Part shown: in pieces, positions 7,437-22,708 of the stretch
How the letters are laid out: every line of letters begins with the position of its first letter
Numbering within the stretch: the first letter of the stretch is position 1
Origin: Epithemia pelagica
Lineage: Eukaryota; Protista; Bacillariophyta
Direction: 5' to 3'
NCBI GenBank assembly: GCA_946965045.2
Contig: OX337231.1
Location: forward strand, 2,790,001 to 2,854,000
Length of the DNA: 64,000 nt
Notes under the pieces: model-generated
Told to the model about the DNA's origin: nothing
Seen by the model: only the letters and a program-made list of their open reading frames with translations
The model's database searches: none
Made by a program: the position numbers and the translations under genes

Positions 7437-10192
7437 ATGAAGTTTGCGTCCAAACATGCCACGACGGCGGTGTTGTTATGGTCGTTTTTCCTATCAGTAA
7501 CCTCACAGAATGCCAATCCAAGTAGTAGCAACAAGCAGTTTGTTCCTGAGAACGTTGAAGAGAACACGGTCTACTGCGATATTCCCCCGTACCAAAGCAC
7601 TGCTTTCGAGCCAAAAGATGAAATGTGCGAGAATGTTGTAGACGATATACTCGGAGATGAGGATGCTATTCAAGCCCTGGCGGAAGCATATGCTCCCCAT
7701 TTATATTTTCACCCCTTGGAACTTTTCACCATGAGCTCCGTGAACCGCACTTTTGGAGATCCATCGAAAGGACAAATTTTTTTCAACGGCGTTGATCGCT
7801 TGATCTTTGACGAAGAACTGAACCAAACATCTCTCGCACTTACAACGCGCGATCCTGATTATGTTCTTTATTCTCATGCTTTCTCATTTGAGCATGAACT
7901 TGAAACGGAGTACAAGCTTGGTGATGGTTTCGACGAGAATGGGCTCTCTTCAGCCCCCATTTACTTTCGACCTTTTGATTCTGGCAACGGGACAATCACG
8001 TTCCACTATCTCATGTACTACACATGGAACGGACCAACCAACATGGGTATCCTGAGCACGTACAATGGAACAGATAACTATGTGAGGCTTTCCCTGTCAC
8101 CTTGGGGTGTTCACGAGGGAGACTGGGGTGAGTTTCTTTTTGAACAATATTGCTGTTTTGGGTTTGACAGTTGACAGGTTCATCCTAACACTTTTTTTTC
8201 ACGCGACAGAATCTATGAGTGTAACAGTGTGCAAGCATCCCAGCGCTAGCCAGCCACTTGGCATCACATACAGACAGCGCGACTTTGGACAGATGCTGGA
8301 TTGTACTCGTGGCGAATGCACGTTCCATGAAGATAGCGCAACAAATCCAGTCGGTTTTGTTGCCCTCAATAGCCACGACGTGTATCCGTTTTCCGCGCGA
8401 GAGCTAGTCTATGGGGAAGCATATCCTCTTGAATTCTGGATCAACTTGCAAGCCGTTCTTACGGTTGACCGAACTGCGTACATGGATTTAGACGGTAACA
8501 CACGGCGTTTTTCTCCGAGTTCCGATAATGTCATACGCCTTGCGGAGCAAGAGGACATCGTCCCGGATGCTTCGGAAGATTCTCAGCAATGGGGAGCCTT
8601 TGGAGGCAGATGGGGACGGTCATCAGTCTCAAGTGAAGACCTTGTCTCTGAGTACCCTTTTTGTTTCGGCAGGAATACGCTCAGTTTCGTGGAGTGTCCC
8701 ACAGAAACCGAGGATCCAGTGTTTCTTATTGTCATGCAAATGTTAGGCGTAAATTCGACTTCTAACCCAATGCTCGCAGCAGCAAAGGCGTTGTCGGATT
8801 TCCTTATCGACTTCTTTGCCGATAGCGTCAGTGCCCCAACTGGGCCCGCAGCGGAAGCCTACTACTCGCGTCTCAACGGTGTCGGGAATGCTCCTATTTG
8901 GGATCGCATTAGTTCAGATTCCACCGGTGCTCAATACTGTCAAGAACTTGTGGACAACATACCTGATACAACCCGGCTACCCGCGGATTCTGAAGTATTG
9001 CCGCTTGTCAAGAACGTCATTGGGATTGTTTTGATGTGTATTGGTTTCACTTTTCTCTCGATCTGCTACTTCATTTTTTGGAAAACTGAGGGAGTCCGCC
9101 CCCTCCTAGAGAAAGATGAAGATGGACGATACATGAGACCCTCAAGATCAGCCAGAAGCTGGGTATACCGAAAGCTTGGCTCTATACGGGTGCTTGGGTG
9201 GTTTCCTTAGGCGGAACAATTCTGTTTTTTACAGGTAAGCAAGACATTGAGACAAAGTTCCACATCTATTGTGCCTAACACATCATTTCTGGTTGTAGGC
9301 TACGGTATTTTACTGAGCCTTCTTGAAGACACATTCCCTGGACTCGACTTCGAAACAATCAACAACATTTTTCTTACCTTGGGTATATTTGTGATGATAA
9401 TAGACACGTTAATCCTAATTGCAATCTGGCTACGAAGCGACGATCTCTGGCTTCAAATCAATGAAACATATTTCGACATCGTTGGCGATGACGAAGGAAT
9501 GGAGCAGTTTAAAAGAAATGAGGTCCTCAAGCATAACCATGGTCGCATTCAGACCTTTTTCATGGTGGCATATTCATTTCTGTTGTTGAGTCTAATCCTT
9601 GCTGTTCTCATGGTTGTGATCGGCATTTTCAACGTTGGATTCTCGTATGCATTTGGATATGCATGCAGGGAAGTAGTCGGTGCACTAGATGGAATTTGCA
9701 TTAGATTTGCGGCGTTCGACATGAGAGAAATCAAGTGCGGTGATGACTTTCTATCGGTACGTTTCTATCTCTATTCGTTGTGCAAGTATCTCGCGTTCTT
9801 TAACCTCGCCAACTTATCTTTTGAGCAGTTTTGCAACGATTGGGCACAAAAGGAAATGGTTATGACACTATGGGGGGCCTTCATTGTAACGGTTGGTCAC
9901 TTCTTCTTGATTTCCGCTTGAGGGATGGCAGTCATGCATAACCGATTTGCAAAGAGGGCGATCGCGCTTCTTCCCACTCGAGAAGATTACGCCAAAGGCT
10001 TTCTGTACTCAACTCGTTGAGGACGACAAAGTAAGCAGTTCAATTATGCCAATAGACGTACCAGAATCCTCAGAGCAGTCAGACCAAATCCAAGATGAAG
10101 ACACAAAGGATGCTGACAATGGTGAATCAGACAACGTGGAACAAGAAGAGACAAACGAGGAAGAAGTCGAAACGGAGAATGCAACAGGTTAA
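7437..10192 (+). pseudogene. Signal peptide + Vps62/DUF946-like domain + multi-TM protein, with apparent lesions
   Basis: Vps62-like motifs YAPHLYFHPLE and HEGDW|ESMSV across intron 8128-8209. Further introns at 9235-9298 and 9757-9828. Splicing requires a frameshift between 9120 and ~9175. There is an in-frame TGA at 9919-9921, and the acidic tail lies in yet another frame. Confidence 0.6.
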
Positions 10193-10412
10193 TTCCATCG
10201 ACCGAAGCGAATGAGAAAGGCCAAACGTCGCTTTATATCATTTTATTTCTAGTGTATTTATGTTAATTGAGCATACACGGCGTTGTACACATATCTATAA
10301 TATGACAGGCGCCATTGGACCACTGCTCTCTAAAGGAAAGACAAGAGACATGCATACAAATGAAGGGACCAAAGTTTGGACAAGCCAGAAGGGGAATGGT
10401 TTCATGACATTT

Positions 10413-11441
10413 CTATCGTCGAAAGGCAGGAACCACGTGAGTGGGAACAATTCCGCCCTCTTCCAAAAAGAGGTTTTGTAACAGTTGCTCTTCTGGCAAA
10501 GCGCCAAAGTTTACACCGCCAAGCTGGGGTGCATGAATTCCTGATGAAACAAATATGCTCGGAATAAGAGCTGAGTTTGCTCCCATAATATCGTGATGAA
10601 GCGAATCTCCTACATGAGCAACACGAGCAGCCGGTAAGCACAGTACATTAAGACAAGCCTCAAAATGTTCAGCTTGAGGTTTTCCAAAGAGTCGGATGTT
10701 GGTCGCTCCGAGTTCAACATAGCGCTGAGCGATCTTTCCCGGCATATAATTGGTTCCGCCGGTTGGTGTTTGAACAATGACATCAGGGTTGGCGCAAACA
10801 AGAGGTAGATTTCGTTCAAGGCATGGCTGAAGCAAAGGATCAATAACTTCGTGGGTCTCTCCATCTTGTAAAAATGAACCCAGGCTAGGCGATTCAAGAT
10901 CTCTCCCTCTAAACCAAACTTCTGATCCATGAAGGAGCAAGAAATCAGCTTCGTCCACCGTTGAAGCCACTTGAAGTCCTCCGCAATGATCAAGGAATGC
11001 TTGTGGTGTGGCAGTCAATCGTGGATTGGATGCGTCGCTTGCATCCCATGTGAACATTAGAGCCTTGGAGTTCGGGCCGTACTCTTGACGTATATACTTG
11101 GAGGCCTCCTCTCCCGATGTTACCGCCCCCACGAAAAGATTCTGATCAAATCCAAGTTTCGGGAGTTTCAGCATGGCTTTGTCACTTGGTGCTGAGGTAT
11201 TGCTCAGAATAATCAGCTTCTTGTTCTTTCGCGCAAGGTGTTTAACCAGTTCGACTGCTCCATCCAGGGCATTTGCACCATTGTGAAGAACACCAAATTG
11301 GTCAAGAATGAAGCCGTCATACATGTCAACAAGCTGATCGGAAAAACACTGGTGGGTTGAATAGACCAGGCGATTTGAAGAAACATCTCCGAAAAGTGCC
11401 ATTAGTGACGTAGCTGAGCGAGATGGATTGGTTATTCTCAT
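10413..11441 (-). CDS. HAD-superfamily hydrolase, subfamily IIA
   Basis: Motif I FILDQFGVLHNG, ILSNTS, CANPD, GKP and motif IV HVGDSLHHDIMGA. Confidence 0.9.
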   Translation of the reverse strand: MRITNPSRSATSLMALFGDVSSNRLVYSTHQCFSDQLVDMYDGFILDQFGVLHNGANALDGAVELVKHLARKNKKLIILSNTSAPSDKAMLKLPKLGFDQNLFVGAVTSGEEASKYIRQEYGPNSKALMFTWDASDASNPRLTATPQAFLDHCGGLQVASTVDEADFLLLHGSEVWFRGRDLESPSLGSFLQDGETHEVIDPLLQPCLERNLPLVCANPDVIVQTPTGGTNYMPGKIAQRYVELGATNIRLFGKPQAEHFEACLNVLCLPAARVAHVGDSLHHDIMGANSALIPSIFVSSGIHAPQLGGVNFGALPEEQLLQNLFLEEGGIVPTHVVPAFRR

Positions 11442-11634
11442 CTTTTGTATCTGTAATCATAGAGTATAAGGTGTATTAAAGAGAGATTTGTTTGTAGGAG
11501 TAAGTGCCGACGGCGACGGCCCAAGGCGCACTACAATATTAGACGCGTCCTTTCCCCGTCACAGGGGACGCTTTTGTGTCGCGTTAAATGGGGGGGGGGG
11601 CGAAAACTCGGCTTCACATTCGCAATAATTCACA

Positions 11635-12304
11635 ATGGTCTTGACTGCTGTTGAACAACAATCGATGGACTTCCAAGATCAGGAGATTGATGCTAGCATA
11701 GACTTTTGCTACTGGCTTGCACTCCTACCATGCCATTTTGGGGCCTGTCCGTACAAGACGGTTCTAAGGAAGAAGTAACGAAAACCGATGTGTAAGTGCG
11801 AGCGTTATTGCGTTCTCGAATTTCTTAACGAAGTGGTCTTCACGTGCCTCATATGTCTCTTCTCTTGCTTGTTGTGACATGCTTGTTCAGGTCAATTTGT
11901 GGTACACATGTGGAAAAGCGGCCCTATGGTGAATTGGGAAGTGTAACTGCTTTTGTTGCGTTTCGGCGAATTCTGGTATTGGGGAAATTCAACCTGGATG
12001 TGGCTGTGACGAAGAACGTGTTGACGAAATTGTTACAGAATTAAAGAAGCGAATGCGTGCACGAGGTGACACTGCACAGATTCTTCGCTCAGAGGAGACT
12101 CTGCAGCGTCTTGACAAACTTGATGCCAAACTTGTAAGTATCGATGCTTCCTATGATCGAGAATTCCTTTGCGCATGAGATTATGTTGACGAAAGGCGAA
12201 CTCACACCGATTGCTGATATTGCCATATTCTGTTTCAGGATCTTATCATGCAGCACTTAAGAATCCCACCTGATTCTATGAAGATTGATCCTGAAACCCG
12301 CTAG
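11635..12304 (+). pseudogene. Small 3-exon Cys-rich hypothetical protein with two frameshifts
   Basis: GT-AG introns at 11792-11890 and 12134-12238 join EEVTKTD|VSICGTHVEKRPYGELGSV and NCFCC...PGCGCDEERVDEIVTELKKRMRARGDT...KL|DLIMQHL*. Frame breaks are needed near 11765 and 11944. Confidence 0.55.
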
Positions 12305-12706
12305 CTCTGAGCTGAACGGGGAAGGGAAAGATATGATGCCATTCACCATTGTTTGATCGAGTGTATTTTTTTAAATGGTTTTCGTTTTGTATTTGTGAAT
12401 GAGTCATGCCTTGTGGGACCAGTATTTTCCTTTGATTGTTTCCGATAGTGGTAGATGTTTTACATACTAGAAGTAAGAACGACACATCGTTGAGAGTCTA
12501 TGAGATTGATAAACATGAATGGATCACATGAGGTACGTGCATCTCCGATCTCCGATGAATCGTACTCCTATTATGGGACTGCTCAACTAGCTAGAGGAGC
12601 AGCTACTCCTACCTACTGTACACGTTTAGTACCAAATGACAAAATGCGTCATTTTCAAAAAATGACATGGAAAATTTAGGTTCTAAAATTTTTTTCCAAA
12701 AAACGC

Positions 12707-13115
12707 TTGTTTGGGGGCAATCAAAATTTGCCCCGTCACAGCGACGATGGCAGTGACGAAGAAGAGGCCACAAATCCTCGTCCCTCGAAGCAAGAGACGA
12801 CGCAGTGGTGGAAAGCTCACCCAGTGACCGCCCTGAAACACGTCTTGTCGCTGGCACTGACGCTCTTTAGCGTTGTCGTGGTGTCGGCTGCTATTTTTAC
12901 CAAACAAACGACGGCAACCAGAGAGAAAAACGTCCATCCCATTTTGGCCTATATTGTTTTCTGGGGTTTGATTCTTTGGCTGGCCATGATGGAAGGTGGA
13001 TTGAACTGCATGGTGGGTCTAAAGCCCATTAACAAGTCGGTGTACCGCAAGACTCATCCCCGCACACACAAGATCACTTCCCTGGCTCACAAAGGAGATA
13101 ATCTAGAGCGATTCA
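12707..13115 (+). pseudogene. SIT: Silicon transporter (SIT family) N-terminal fragment, inside TIR element
   Basis: HPILAYIVFWGLILWLAMMEGG...VGLKPINKSVYRKTHPRTHKITSLAHKGDNLERFI matches SIT TM1-2 and the following loop. It breaks off just before the GRQ motif, and no in-frame ATG is evident. Confidence 0.8.
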
Positions 13116-14102
13116 TCTTGTCCCCTTGCTTGGAAAAGGCGACGAGGTTGCTGTTCTGGTAAACAATCTTGGTGGAACTTCTAATTTCGAAATGTCCATA
13201 CTCGCACGATCATGTATCAAGTTGTTGGAAAGTAGTGAGTTTGGAGTTCAAGCCAAACGCGTGTATGTCGGATCATTCATGACTTCATTCGATATGCATG
13301 GAGCGTCATTGACCATTCTTAACGTGACGGACCAAGCGGACATCATAATGTATCTCGATGCGTCAACAACCGCTCCCGCATGGGCATCATGCGACATCTG
13401 GTCCGATGGATCTGCTCGACCGTCTGCTACGGAACTACCTGAAATCATTGTGGACGAGAAAGTGGCAGAACTGAATTACCCACATCTTCAGATTAATGGC
13501 TTTTCGCAGATTGCCCAAAAGATGCTAGTGTCAGCGACTGGTAAGCTTGCGGATGCCGAGCCTATCTTAACAAAATACGATACAGTAGTTGGCGATTGCG
13601 ACTGCGGAATAACGATGAAACGGGGAGCACAGGAGATTTCGGGCCGTATTGAAAAGGGCACAATCCCAACTGATCATCCCGTAACGATGCTGAGCGCATT
13701 AGCCGATGCGGTTTCGGCTTCCATGGGAGGAACATCCGGTGTACTTTTGGAACTCATGTTTCGGAAAATGTCCTCCTTTTTGAGTTTTTGTCCCTCCATT
13801 GGAGTGGTAGAAATGGGCAAGGCGGTCCAAGCTGGTGTTGATGCGGTAAGTCTCTATGGAGGCGCTCACGTTGGTTCACGTACCATGCTTGATGCATTAG
13901 TTCCTGCCGCGATGGCCTTGATGACTAGTGGCTTGGCGGCAGCTTCTACCAAAGCGAGGGAGGAGCAGACAGCACGGCCAAGATGGCGACCGCTTCTGCA
14001 GGACGCTCAAATTATCTCTCTGAAGATGTATTGTCAGGGACTCCAGACCCTGGTGCTGTGGCTGTTGCAATTGTCCTGGAAGCAATGGTTGCTGCTTTGT
14101 AA
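13116..14102 (+). pseudogene. DAK: Dihydroxyacetone kinase/triokinase (Dak1 C-terminus + Dak2 domain) 3' fragment, inside TIR element
   Basis: Motifs VAVLVNNLGGTS, GSFMTSFDMHG, VGDCDCGITM, MGGTSGVL and RTMLDAL. After a 1-nt frameshift at ~13962 the frame continues GADSTAKMATASAGRSNYL...PDPGA to TAA at 14100-14102. The N-terminal half is missing. Confidence 0.88.
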
Positions 14103-14430
14103 TCTGGTTCGAAACTGGATAATGGACATCAAGAGAACGTTCCAGGACAAAGAATAACCCACGGTTAAGTAACTATGTTTCTGATATACACATTTATCCA
14201 ATTCTGTTGTGCTGGAAACATGATGTCGGTGAATCTTCTGGCATACAAGATGCGATTTGTTTCCATATTAAGAGACCCTGATTTGCTTGGAGCATAAGGC
14301 ATCATCCTCCCCACCACATCAGGCCACAAAGTTCTTTGTCGCCATTACCTAGACCAGAACCTCTAGCTACACTTCGATTTTGGTCGATAAAGCGCATTCG
14401 ATACTGCCAATTCTCTTTGTTCTTCTTTCT

Positions 14431-14508
14431 GTTGTTTCTGTTTTGAGCTTTGAGATGGACCTGTTTGGTTGTTGTTTCTGTTTCGAGCTTTGAGATGGAC
14501 CTGTTTGG
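14431..14508. repeat. 40-bp tandem duplication (2 copies)
   Basis: GTTGTTTCTGTTTYGAGCTTTGAGATGGACCTGTTTGG at 14431 and 14471, one mismatch. Confidence 0.9.
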
Positions 14509-15135
14509 CTTTGGCACCCTCTTGAATGGCACTGTTGGTTTCCTGCTGAGTCATGCTGGATATTCTGGTCAAAGACATGTTGTCGTTGTTGTTATTGTCA
14601 TTGCTTCTGTTTGGACGCTGCTTCTTATCAGGACGGTGTTTGGCCTTGGTAGACAAGTGGTGGGCATGGATACTACATTATGGTGGTGACCGGATCCGTT
14701 CCACGAAATGGAACGATGCGGCTGCCGACTGCCGCGGTGAAACATGCTTGCCATACCAACAAGAGCTGTTCAAGAAGGTCCGAGTAAGTACACTGTGATT
14801 CACAACAAGCCCAGGGTTACGATTCAACAAAAGTAAGTACGGAAATGGTGAGTGGTATGGCAGAAGATGTCGATGACACAAAATGACACGAATCTCACCA
14901 AAAGTTGCCTTCTGCTCTGGCTCTTTTTTGGATGCCACAACCACAACCAACTCAAACATGGAGCTACAGACTTTCTAAGTACACTATTGTTGGGAGTTTA
15001 GAGGCCTTACCTGACCCATGGTGCTCACGAATCGGTCGAGAACGGCCGACAACAACGATTGAATTTTTAGAAACCTTAATGTGTAGGAAAAAAATGTCAT
15101 TTTTTAGGGTTTTGTCATTTGGTACTAAACGTGTA

Positions 15136-15252
15136 CTCCCACTACTCTCTTCTACTCCTACTACTCCTACCTCGAAGTCTAAGAAGTAGTAGGAGTAGGA
15201 GTTGTAAAAGGGAGTACTCCTAGCTCTCTAGCTAGAGGTACTCCTACTCGTA
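15136..15252. repeat. CTAC/GTAG-rich palindromic intergenic tract
   Basis: 13-bp inverted repeat CTACTCCTACTAC (15152-15164) / GTAGTAGGAGTAG (15186-15198) and palindrome GGAGTACTCC (15211-15220). Related motifs occur at 12562-12617 and 33506-33533. Confidence 0.7.
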
Positions 15253-20204: not shown

Positions 20205-22708
20205 AACGGCTAAGGCCAATTGGGATTGGAACAGCCATCAGAAGAGTAGCGGCCAAGACAGCCCTAGTTCACCTTACCGATGCCATTCAACCCCTCATGC
20301 TCCAAGGAGGCCAGTGCGGCATACAAGTGCCCGGGGGAGTCGACTTTGTCGCACAAACCACGGCCATGGCAGTGCGGCAATACATCGACCGAAATCCAAC
20401 AACGACAAACCCATCAACAACATCAACAACAACCGACAGCCAGACGAGACCTCCAAGCCGAGCACTGGTCATGCTGGATCTAACAAATATGTTCAATAAT
20501 GTGAGCAGAACCGAAGCAAGAAAAATCTTGTTAGAGCACGAAGAAACAACACCACTGGTCCCCTTGTTTGACCTGTTAACACAACACACCTGCAAACAAT
20601 GGTACTTTGACGAAAACAAACAAGCACAGTTTTTACAGCAAGAAGAAGGGTTCCCACAGGGCTGCCCTTTGAGCCCGCTATTCTCCTGTCTCGTCTTACT
20701 GGCCTTAACAAACAAGCTGAACAAAGAACAAGCCAAAAGAGCACAACCACGACAGCGCAACAACAACCCACACGACGACGAAATGGGCGGAATAGGACAC
20801 ACCGCATCCATCATGGATGACACATCAGTGTGTTTGCCCCACTGCGACGTCCCATGGTTCCTAAAACGGTTCGAAGCACTCGGTCAGCCTTTGGGAATCA
20901 TTTTGAACAAAAACAAAACAACAATTCTTACCTCCACTGACGGTACATCCCCAGACACTCTAGACCCAACCGACAAACAGTGCCTCGAACAAGCGCTGTC
21001 GTTCCTTTCTCCAGAAGACCCGGCAAAAGCCGAGATCACAAACGGTGTACGATTTCTTGGACAGCCTATAGGCTCCAGCAAATTCGCCCAACAATACATC
21101 CAAAACAAAGTGAAAAAGATGCACCACAAACTAGACTGTTTCTTGCAACTGCCCGACCTCCAAACCAAACACAACCTTTTCAAATTCACCGTGGTATCGT
21201 CCCTGTTGCACCTGCTACCATCAGACGTCAACCTGGCACACACAACAACAAATCCAAGAACGACGCTTTGGTCAAGCCCAACAACATTAGAGACAGAAAA
21301 AATCGTCACACGTTTTCTCTCAGAACTCACCTCGCTCCCCGAAACAGAGATCAGCACTTCGGCTTGCCTCATTGCGGCAATGCCACAACGACTCGGAGGC
21401 CTCGGCTACCAACAAGTGGCCACATCGGCGTACCCAAGATTGCTAACCCAAACGGCACGAGCAATCGCCTTAGCAACCTTAAGAGAAACACCAATCCCGA
21501 AAGTCCACCAAAGGGAACTTATCAATTGGCAAGAAAGCACCGATGAGTACATGACAATTTTCAGAAAAACACTTTCACTATACGCCAATGAACACGCAGA
21601 AGAGCAATTGTACACACCAACGAGGTATGACCATACCACTCACAACAGACTTCTCCATCACACAGTCCAAGAACATACCCTACCGCGATTGGTAGCCGAA
21701 ACCACACCAGAACAACGAACCTTCCTCCCCGGTTTATTGTCGCCTCTCACCAGTTTGGCACTGTCTCTTCCCTTGACAGCAACACAATTTCGCTATCCAA
21801 ACAAAGTATTCCAAACAGCAATCAAAAGAAAGTTGCGGCTCCCCTTGTTCGTGAATGATCCAACACAGTCTTGGCCACAGAAATGCCGCTGCTCGAAGAG
21901 CAAGGCAATTGACCCTCTGGGAGACCATTTGTTCTCATGCACCTCCGCTTCGAAAACAGCCTTTTCGAATGCAATTCGAGATACCTTATTTGATGTACTA
22001 AGACAACTCGCACCAGCAGCTGGAACAGTCGAAACCACCCACGACGTCCACGTTGAGCCACCTGGTTTGGCTCCGCAACACGAGCGAAACATACGGCCCG
22101 CCGATGTTGGGATGCTCCTCCGAAAGCCACACCACAACGACCACTTTCAATATGTGGCAATAGACATCACAATTCCCCCACCTCAGCAACCTTTACCAAT
22201 CAACGACCCGTCCGACCACAAAACAATAGCCACAATGGCATCTAGGGCGCATCAAGAGGCAGCAAGGGCTAAGTTCTGTCGGGATCCACAAACAGCAACA
22301 CACCTGCTCCACAACAGAGTCTATCTCTTACCATTCTCCGTCGACCACCTTGGTTCCTTGGGATCCTTCGCCGATACCCTTCTATTCCCATCAGAATATC
22401 GCAACCAAACCTTATCAACAACCGAACCCCCGCCATGGAACAACCCCTTTTTCGGAAAAGACGAAAAGCGAAGCAAATCACATCCCGCGGCATATGCACT
22501 CTTCCAACAACTGAAAGAAGCACCAAACAACCTGCTTACAAAGGCAAACAAAAACACAAAAAAGTTCGGCTATCCAGAAGCAAACATATACACAATCGGA
22601 CACTTTGCAAAAGCCTCATTGGGACATGCAATAGTATCGGCACTGGCCAACCATGCCAACAATAACATCACAGCGATCCAACATCACCAATCCAATCGAA
22701 AAACTTGA
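20205..22708 (+). CDS. RT-RLE protein (N-terminally incomplete)
   Basis: LRPIGIGTAIRRVAAK begins ~20208, upstream of the listed ATG. Further motifs: LDLTNMFNNVSR, GFPQGCPLSP, SIMDD, MPQRLGGLG, CRC...DPLGDHLFSC, RPADV and AIDITI. Confidence 0.88.

Follow-up and report, generated by a model that had tools for sequence, protein, structure and literature searches.

Pack-type elements are held to drive exon shuffling, first in plants and then in animals, and the way in which they acquire their cargo is still debated. Silicon transporters (SITs) are a signature gene family of diatoms. The Pack-type literature deals with plants and animals. Full-text literature searches returned no description of such an element in diatoms, in line with an earlier note on the DNA considered here, which knew of none, and a diatom MULE preprint explicitly excludes Pack-MULE status for its element. 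Criteria for Pack-TYPE elements have been published (PMC8903248). For Pack-TIRs of animals, gap filling with template switching has been described, in which short microhomology or small insertions are found at the breakpoints (PMC8277862). In the present work, a stretch of 64,000 nucleotides from the diatom Epithemia pelagica (GenBank assembly GCA_946965045.2, contig OX337231.1, positions 2,790,001 to 2,854,000, forward strand; "the window") was analyzed. Positions 12621–15133 of the window (2,513 bp) are a real non-autonomous cut-and-paste DNA transposon with terminal inverted repeats (TIRs), which carries fragments of a SIT gene, a dihydroxyacetone kinase (DAK) gene, and an OBG-type GTPase gene. 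As far as they could be examined, the features by which Pack-TYPE and Pack-TIR elements are recognized are present: it has TIRs, a target-site duplication, and a suitable size, it lacks a transposase, its cargo is genic and can be traced to a parent, and it exists in more than a single copy. The element is very probably a Pack-TYPE/Pack-TIR element with a stepwise history of capture, the DAK piece having probably been obtained by gap repair.

Plain coordinates in the following refer to the window, while L002 to L005 denote other loci in the ENA assembly of the same organism (ERZ21939226). Read evidence comes from sets of read-derived Logan contigs, two of which are DNA-like (X1 and X2) and one RNA-like (X4); a further set (X5) is a marine metagenome from another study. 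An inverted-repeat search of the window revealed arms of 27 nt at 12618–12644 and 15110–15136 with a complementarity of 100%. The 24-nt TIR core, which starts with CACGTTTAGTACC, occurs at only two sites in the whole 64 kb even when up to three mismatches are allowed, and it was absent from shuffled sequences. The left TIR (12621–12644, plus strand) and the right TIR (15110–15133, minus strand) are bordered by the two copies of a TA target-site duplication, at 12619–12620 and 15134–15135, and the insertion context reads ...CTACTG-TA-CACG...CGTG-TA-CTCCC... The arrangement TA-CACG...CGTG-TA is found in all three independent insertions (window, L003, and L004). Two other ways to draw the ends, with GTAC as a 4-bp duplication or with a TIR of 27 nt, were considered and ruled out, as the flanks of L003 read GTA...TAT. 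The GTA/TAC extension seen in the window is not repeated there, so the duplication is TA and the TIR starts with CACG.

The subterminal repeats at the ends of the element are real. Beyond the perfect core, the two ends can be aligned imperfectly over about 75 nt, and 5 of the 11 AATGACA motifs of the window fall in the 466 bp of these ends. The left subterminal region (12645–12740, plus strand) contains a second AATGACA and about 70–95 nt that are common to the family, as delimited by a three-copy alignment, the end-to-end alignment, and the motif count. The family-specific right subterminal region (14794–15109, plus strand) has a read depth of 3–5 times the single-copy level and is 93% identical to L004 10167–9822. 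Both flanks of the element consist of low-complexity DNA of the CTACTCC type. The earlier note had reported perfect 24-bp TIRs (27 bp with the flanking bases) with TA on both sides, diverged subterminal repeats, and CTACTC-rich flanks, and all of these observations were reproduced. Two local features accompany the ends. In the right flank (15134–15217), TACTCCTAC forms a 9-bp tandem array of four units, and 13 nt further on, it has an inverted partner (36-nt arms, 75% complementary), so the target region can form a hairpin. In the left subterminal region, the 31 nt at 12700–12730, with a GGGGCAA/TTGCCCC hairpin, are present in other genomic contexts, and the matching read contigs diverge on both sides.

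The most informative relative of the element was retrieved with its SIT open reading frame (ORF), which led to a relative of 160 aa and 94% identity on a 2.9-Mb contig (L003). At positions 9909–12545 of this locus, there is a 2.6-kb element that has the same TIRs, with the left one identical, and lies in unrelated, non-repetitive DNA. Its left 496 bp correspond to window 12618–13116 (96.8% identity) and its right 767 bp to 14373–15138 (97.0% identity). The centers of the two copies differ, since L003 contains more of the SIT gene and more of the OBG gene where the window has DAK. The SIT sequence of L003 is divided into three broken ORFs, which match positions 3–120, 252–360, and 387–441 of the Pfam profile. 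The same element was also found on a second contig (L005), with 99.7% identity and the same neighboring genes; L005 is the allelic haplotig of L003.

A third member was found by a search with an ORF of the right end. It is a 2.14-kb element on a 367-kb contig (L004), and it shares only the ends with the other copies: about 70–95 bp on the left (90% identity) and about 345 bp on the right (93%). Its TIR carries the same A-to-T variant in both arms, so the change in one arm is compensated in the other. No Pfam domain was detected in the interior of the L004 element, and recognizable genes are thus not carried by every member of the family. With these loci, the earlier note's check for further copies of the TIR in the genome was answered, since L003/L005 and L004 are TA-flanked and unlinked. 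As their flanks differ, an origin of these copies by segmental duplication is unlikely. Members of the family are recognized by the 24-nt TIR, by AATGACA motifs in the subterminal regions, by ends of about 90 bp (left) and about 340 bp (right), and by their insertion at TA. The read depth over 14620–15183 amounts to 3–5.5 times that of a single copy, and in another read contig, the right end is linked at 14807 to a sequence other than that of the window. Taken together, the data indicate a small family of roughly 4–5 loci in a raphid pennate diatom.

Several observations concern the surroundings and the inner structure of the L004 element. It was inserted into a perfect 14-nt palindrome, TACGAG-TA-CTCGTA, so that the inverted repeat reads 32 nt here (9819–9850 and 11937–11968). 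TACTAC/GTAGTA-rich DNA is present at two of the three insertion sites of the family, which may reflect a target preference. Nested within the L004 element is an element of about 848 bp (10352–11199) whose inverted ends are perfect over 18 nt (CTAGTGTCTATTCTACCC) and which has GTCCTCATATGAGGAC palindromes in its interior; it is probably a different miniature TIR element. A hairpin with 38-nt arms (11619–11705; 92% complementary, 11-nt loop) also lies inside it. Finally, a hAT remnant (Dimer_Tnp_hAT, E 4e-16) occupies L004 8875–9647, 175 bp beyond the end of the element. It was ruled out as the partner transposase, since the TIRs do not enclose it and the duplications made by hAT elements are 8 bp long.

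The interior of the window element can be partitioned completely into the left end, the SIT piece, the DAK piece, the antisense OBG piece, and the right end of 340 bp. As everything is accounted for, no room is left for a transposase; the interior ORFs likewise gave no Pfam match to one, which agrees with what the earlier note had stated. An Rfam scan of the element found no match. ORFs of the right end were examined as possible transposase remnants and rejected, as Pfam gave no match and a protein atlas gave sub-threshold matches only. The SIT N-terminal fragment (12741–13116, plus strand) is common to L003 up to 13116, and it was recognized through Pfam Silic_transp (PF03842), with which window 12707–13162 matches profile positions 3–101 of 513 (E 1e-31), and through read contigs of a separate SIT locus. 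It starts within the coding region and has no in-frame ATG of its own. The DAK fragment (13118–14370, plus strand) comprises the end of Dak1, Dak2, the stop codon (14100–14102), and then about 270 bp of 3' flank. Window 13126–14157 matches Dak1 positions 236–313 of 313 and Dak2 positions 2–131 of 174, and the piece aligns with the PDB sequences of solved dihydroxyacetone kinases from about residue 273 onwards. The SIT 5' fragment and the DAK 3' fragment with its stop and 3' flank had been proposed in the earlier note, and both assignments held in the Pfam matches and the alignment to L002.

The third segment, which that note had left unidentified, can now be assigned. Positions 14373–14790 hold, on the minus strand and thus antisense to both SIT and DAK, the 5' region of an OBG-type GTPase gene with its first residues. 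The segment is collinear with L003 11779–12196, and it was identified as OBG because a minus-strand ORF that runs through the equivalent point in L003 matches PF01018 (GTP1_OBG, positions 1–89 of 155, E 2e-18). A 40-bp tandem duplication within the segment is common to both copies (window 14430–14508, L003 11839–11918). An X4 RNA contig in which 14428 is joined to 14469 is without this duplication; its origin may be another copy or the parental OBG gene. Past 14790, the boundary between OBG and the right end, a read contig diverges from the window. All three pieces of cargo are non-functional, being out of frame, frameshifted, or antisense: the SIT frame enters DAK out of frame, and DAK has lost 1 bp (A) after 13960, which shifts its frame, while the parent L002 keeps the A. 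The ORF caller of a public protein collection annotated the SIT and DAK fragments as genes, which calls for caution in diatom annotation.

The parent of the DAK piece was located in the same assembly. The DAK ORF of the element is present in the public protein collection, where it derives from ERZ21939226 and the 1.6-Mb contig that contains the window. The other member of its 90% protein cluster is a complete Dak1-Dak2 gene (L002) on the separate 2.06-Mb contig ctg1359l, and the nearest named homologues are those of the raphid pennate diatoms Entomoneis, Mayamaea, Nitzschia, and Seminavis. Between window 13118–14349 and L002 10284–11564, 1,191 of 1,281 positions are identical, with three gaps that all fall in the 3' flank, and the match runs ten bases more (CTCTAGCTAC), to window 14370. 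The coding part shows 24 differences in 985 nt (97.5% identity), 12 of them synonymous and 12 non-synonymous (pN/pS 0.33), and among the differences from the parent, a G-to-C change affects the conserved motif GDGDCG. An X4 transcript contig of DAK matches from 13118 and is preceded by the upstream sequence of L002. The 3' flank of about 270 bp was copied along with the gene and no poly(A) is present at the joint, which rules out retroposition and argues that the copying took place at the DNA level. An RVT_2 reverse-transcriptase gene of a retrotransposon is found near the DAK parent (L002 3738–6032).

A separate SIT locus is visible in the DNA and RNA contigs. These match 12741–13113 with 23 differences in 373 positions (about 6%) and have other sequence upstream of 12741, and past 13113, the X4 transcript contig of SIT continues as L003 does. 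The existence of this locus follows from X1 and X2, where its variants have the depth of a single copy. A word-based search of the public protein collection for a SIT parent, which was limited by length, returned only the sister copy, and an exhaustive search of the representatives gave nothing above 62% identity. Of the parental loci that the earlier note had expected, the DAK gene is therefore available intact at L002, while SIT is represented as a separate locus, about 6% divergent, in DNA and RNA contigs only. That note had also claimed pieces from at least two unlinked loci. The location of the DAK parent on another contig agrees with this, but the picture has to be refined, since the capture was stepwise, with SIT and OBG taken up first and DAK only after a transposition.

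The chimeric structure itself can be read in the contigs. X1 and X2 show no differences from the window over both flanks and over 13008–14516. A contig covering 13008–13186 spans the SIT/DAK joint with no differences at a depth of 170 in X1 and 121 in X2, while the flanks have depths of 172–179 and 119–128, respectively. The presence of the joint at a flank-like depth means that the chimera is real and single-copy. A contig from X5 (14288–14438) spans the DAK/OBG joint, again with no differences. The public ENA record of the contig that contains the window differs from the window at three bases (9073, 12626, and 12827). The G at 12626 would leave the left TIR imperfect, with one mismatch (CACGTGTAG), but the read contigs back the T of the window. 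Over 12650–12740, the DNA contigs carry variants of the sister copy, which we attribute to contig paths that cross the 40 identical bases at the TIR.

With the sister copy at hand, the order of events can be followed. The joint between the left end and SIT and that between OBG and the right end are identical in the window and in L003, and these common joints imply that SIT and OBG were captured once and that transposition then carried them to another TA site. At the point of the window's joint, the SIT sequence of L003 continues without a break, like the independent SIT transcript, and its OBG sequence extends into the domain; hence, the window form is the derived one. L003 positions 10405–11778, a stretch of 1,374 bp with the remainder of SIT and the greater part of OBG, correspond to the 1,253 bp of DAK in the window. 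In the three-way comparison of the window, L003, and L002, one extra base, C, stands at the SIT/DAK joint (13117), and two extra bases, AC, stand at the DAK/OBG joint (14371–14372). The joints read GATTCAT-C-TTGTCCCC and CTCTAGCTAC-AC-TTCGA. At the first of them, SIT continues with TGTGGG and DAK is preceded by CAAT, which gives ATTGT as a possible microhomology.

The likely route is the following. An ancestral member of the family would have acquired a SIT fragment on the plus strand and the 5' fragment of an OBG-GTPase gene on the minus strand. Transposition of this cargo-bearing element would then have produced the copies at L003 and in the window. On the branch of the window copy, 1,253 bp copied from DAK would have taken the place of the central 1,374 bp, probably by repair of a double-strand gap left by excision or by an internal break. 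In such a repair, the DAK locus would become the new template for synthesis from both retained ends, which would be rejoined with one or two extra bases. Retained ends, an ectopic center, and one or two extra bases at the joints are the pattern that the gap-filling model predicts. The divergences agree with a stepwise sequence: SIT differs from its parent by about 6%, the two copies differ by 3.0–3.2%, and DAK differs from its parent by 2.5% in the coding part and by 3.3% overall. As the divergence of DAK is close to that between the copies, the DAK event would be about as old as their split, and a capture of DAK during repair of the donor site is compatible with this timing. If the element is still mobilized at all, this would presumably be by a transposase supplied in trans.

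Some of the data weigh against this history. One X4 RNA contig (13645–14423) spans the DAK/OBG joint, yet it has the parent-like A after 13960 and seven other differences; it may represent a further DAK-bearing copy, the allele of another strain, or a chimeric contig. The assembly and the Logan contigs may share a sample. Microhomology at the left joint of the DAK piece is not clean, and the SIT and OBG parents are known from read contigs only, their loci not having been retrieved. Only one DAK-bearing copy is known, so DAK may never have been transposed and may be repair filler. Neither the window nor the other loci examined contained an autonomous element with these TIRs, and an exact scan of JGI metagenome contigs with the 24-mer TIR gave no match. 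Two JGI metagenome contigs that fitted a 19-of-20 TIR pattern were dismissed as chance, as each resemblance covers only 25 nt and lies inside a long ORF of a densely coding contig. The empty site, for which the earlier note had suggested a search in the other haplotype, was found neither among the read contigs, none of which skips the element, nor among the assembly haplotigs. A haplotig of the window locus was not found in the ENA assembly, where the eight flanking proteins all form single-member clusters on one contig.

The uniqueness of the DAK-bearing copy leads to the closest competing explanation. A resident element of the L003 type might have suffered an internal double-strand break that was patched with DAK filler independently of transposition, and the DAK form would then never have moved. 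Both DAK breakpoints lie well inside the element and have small insertions, and, according to Tan et al., transposition-independent gap filling explains most single-copy Pack-TIRs of animals (PMC8277862). These points make the explanation a possibility to be taken seriously, although we regard it as somewhat doubtful. The same data fit a repair coupled to excision equally well, and the DAK-parent divergence of 2.5–3.3%, so near the copy divergence of 3.0–3.2%, fits a capture around the transposition that separated the copies. The X4 RNA contig, moreover, hints at a second DAK-OBG version. A much more skeptical explanation, in which the structure would be either a product of misassembly or a working SIT-DAK fusion gene with inverted repeats on both sides by chance, could draw on the three bases that differ in the ENA record, one of them in the TIR, and on the sister-copy variants in the read contigs at 12650–12740. 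It is extremely unlikely, given that both chimeric joints occur without differences in read contigs, one of these from a different study, that the same ends flank other cargo at other loci, and that the supposed gene would consist of a SIT that runs out of frame into DAK, a DAK with a frameshift and an altered GDGDCG motif, and an antisense OBG. Stepwise capture with gap repair of the center thus remains our preferred reading, and the identification of a Pack-type gene-capturing element, as proposed in the earlier note, was supported by every refutation test that could be run.

The superfamily is a separate matter, which does not touch the Pack-type reading. The earlier note had stated that the TA duplication fits IS630-Tc1-mariner, and the TA target, found in three of three insertions and a hallmark of Tc1/mariner/pogo, does agree with this; the CAC...GTG ends with a 2-bp duplication fit CACTA/Mirage/Chapaev (CMC) as well, so the assignment is tentative. 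[quoted passage not shown] Several subterminal repeat motifs, such as the AATGACA enriched in the ends, are typical of CACTA-like elements, and CACTA elements are known for gene capture (PMC6379663). Tc1-type ends, on the other hand, also often start with CA, and with the constant TA duplication, this makes membership in CMC rather unlikely. To judge from these ends, the superfamily is best left open between Tc1/mariner-like and CACTA/Mirage-like. One may go further and imagine that an undescribed TA-targeting transposase lineage of diatoms moves the family, that exons are still being shuffled in these organisms through Pack-type capture, and that the window and L003 are a donor/acceptor pair recording one capture by gap repair of the donor site. 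This picture is speculative, and we think it improbable.

The element lies between other genes of the window. A gene on the plus strand upstream has a 105-nt GT..AG intron (12133–12239), as deduced from a spliced X4 RNA contig, and its transcript ends near 12484, about 135 bp short of the element. As the transcript ends before the element, the insertion is intergenic. Downstream, at about 20297–22708, there is an RVT_1 reverse-transcriptase gene of a retrotransposon.

Among the described non-autonomous elements, those of the Stowaway or Tc1/mariner type resemble the present family in the TA at every insertion, in ends that start with CA, and in the lack of coding capacity. The window element differs in being much larger than a typical MITE and in having asymmetric ends (about 90 and 340 bp) and gene cargo. 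The CMC miniature elements (PMC6004678) also have CAC/GTG termini, a 2-bp duplication, and subterminal repeats, whereas the strict TA target of the present family is not a stated feature of CMC. The plant Pack-TYPE elements, which include Pack-MULE, Pack-CACTA, and Pack-Mariner (PMC8903248, PMC6379663), resemble the present element as well. They are non-autonomous TIR elements of 0.3–15 kb with a target-site duplication and no transposase, they contain fragments of several host genes from other loci that are fused and partly antisense, and they are multicopy at distinct sites. The present element differs from them in its host, a diatom and thus a stramenopile, and in the tiny size of its family, with about 4–5 loci. 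The model of Catoni et al., which is based on neighboring insertions and aberrant excision, could explain the first capture of SIT and OBG, if these genes are neighbors, but it does not explain the replacement by DAK.

The animal Pack-TIRs and the gap-filling and FoSTeST models developed for them (Tan et al. 2021, PMC8277862) offer another parallel. They have in common with the present element a parent of more than 90% identity, internal breakpoints with microhomology or small insertions, and the occurrence of multicopy cargo (here SIT/OBG) beside single-copy cargo (here DAK). The element is mechanistically unsurprising. It extends the Pack-type phenomenon to diatoms, with a silicon transporter involved, and in it, nature has kept a clean record of how cargo is turned over. 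The difference from the animal cases is that a sister of the ancestral type survives here together with the derived copy, so the exchanged segment, 1,374 bp out and 1,253 bp in, is open to direct reading without recourse to a consensus, as are the donor locus and the two breakpoints.

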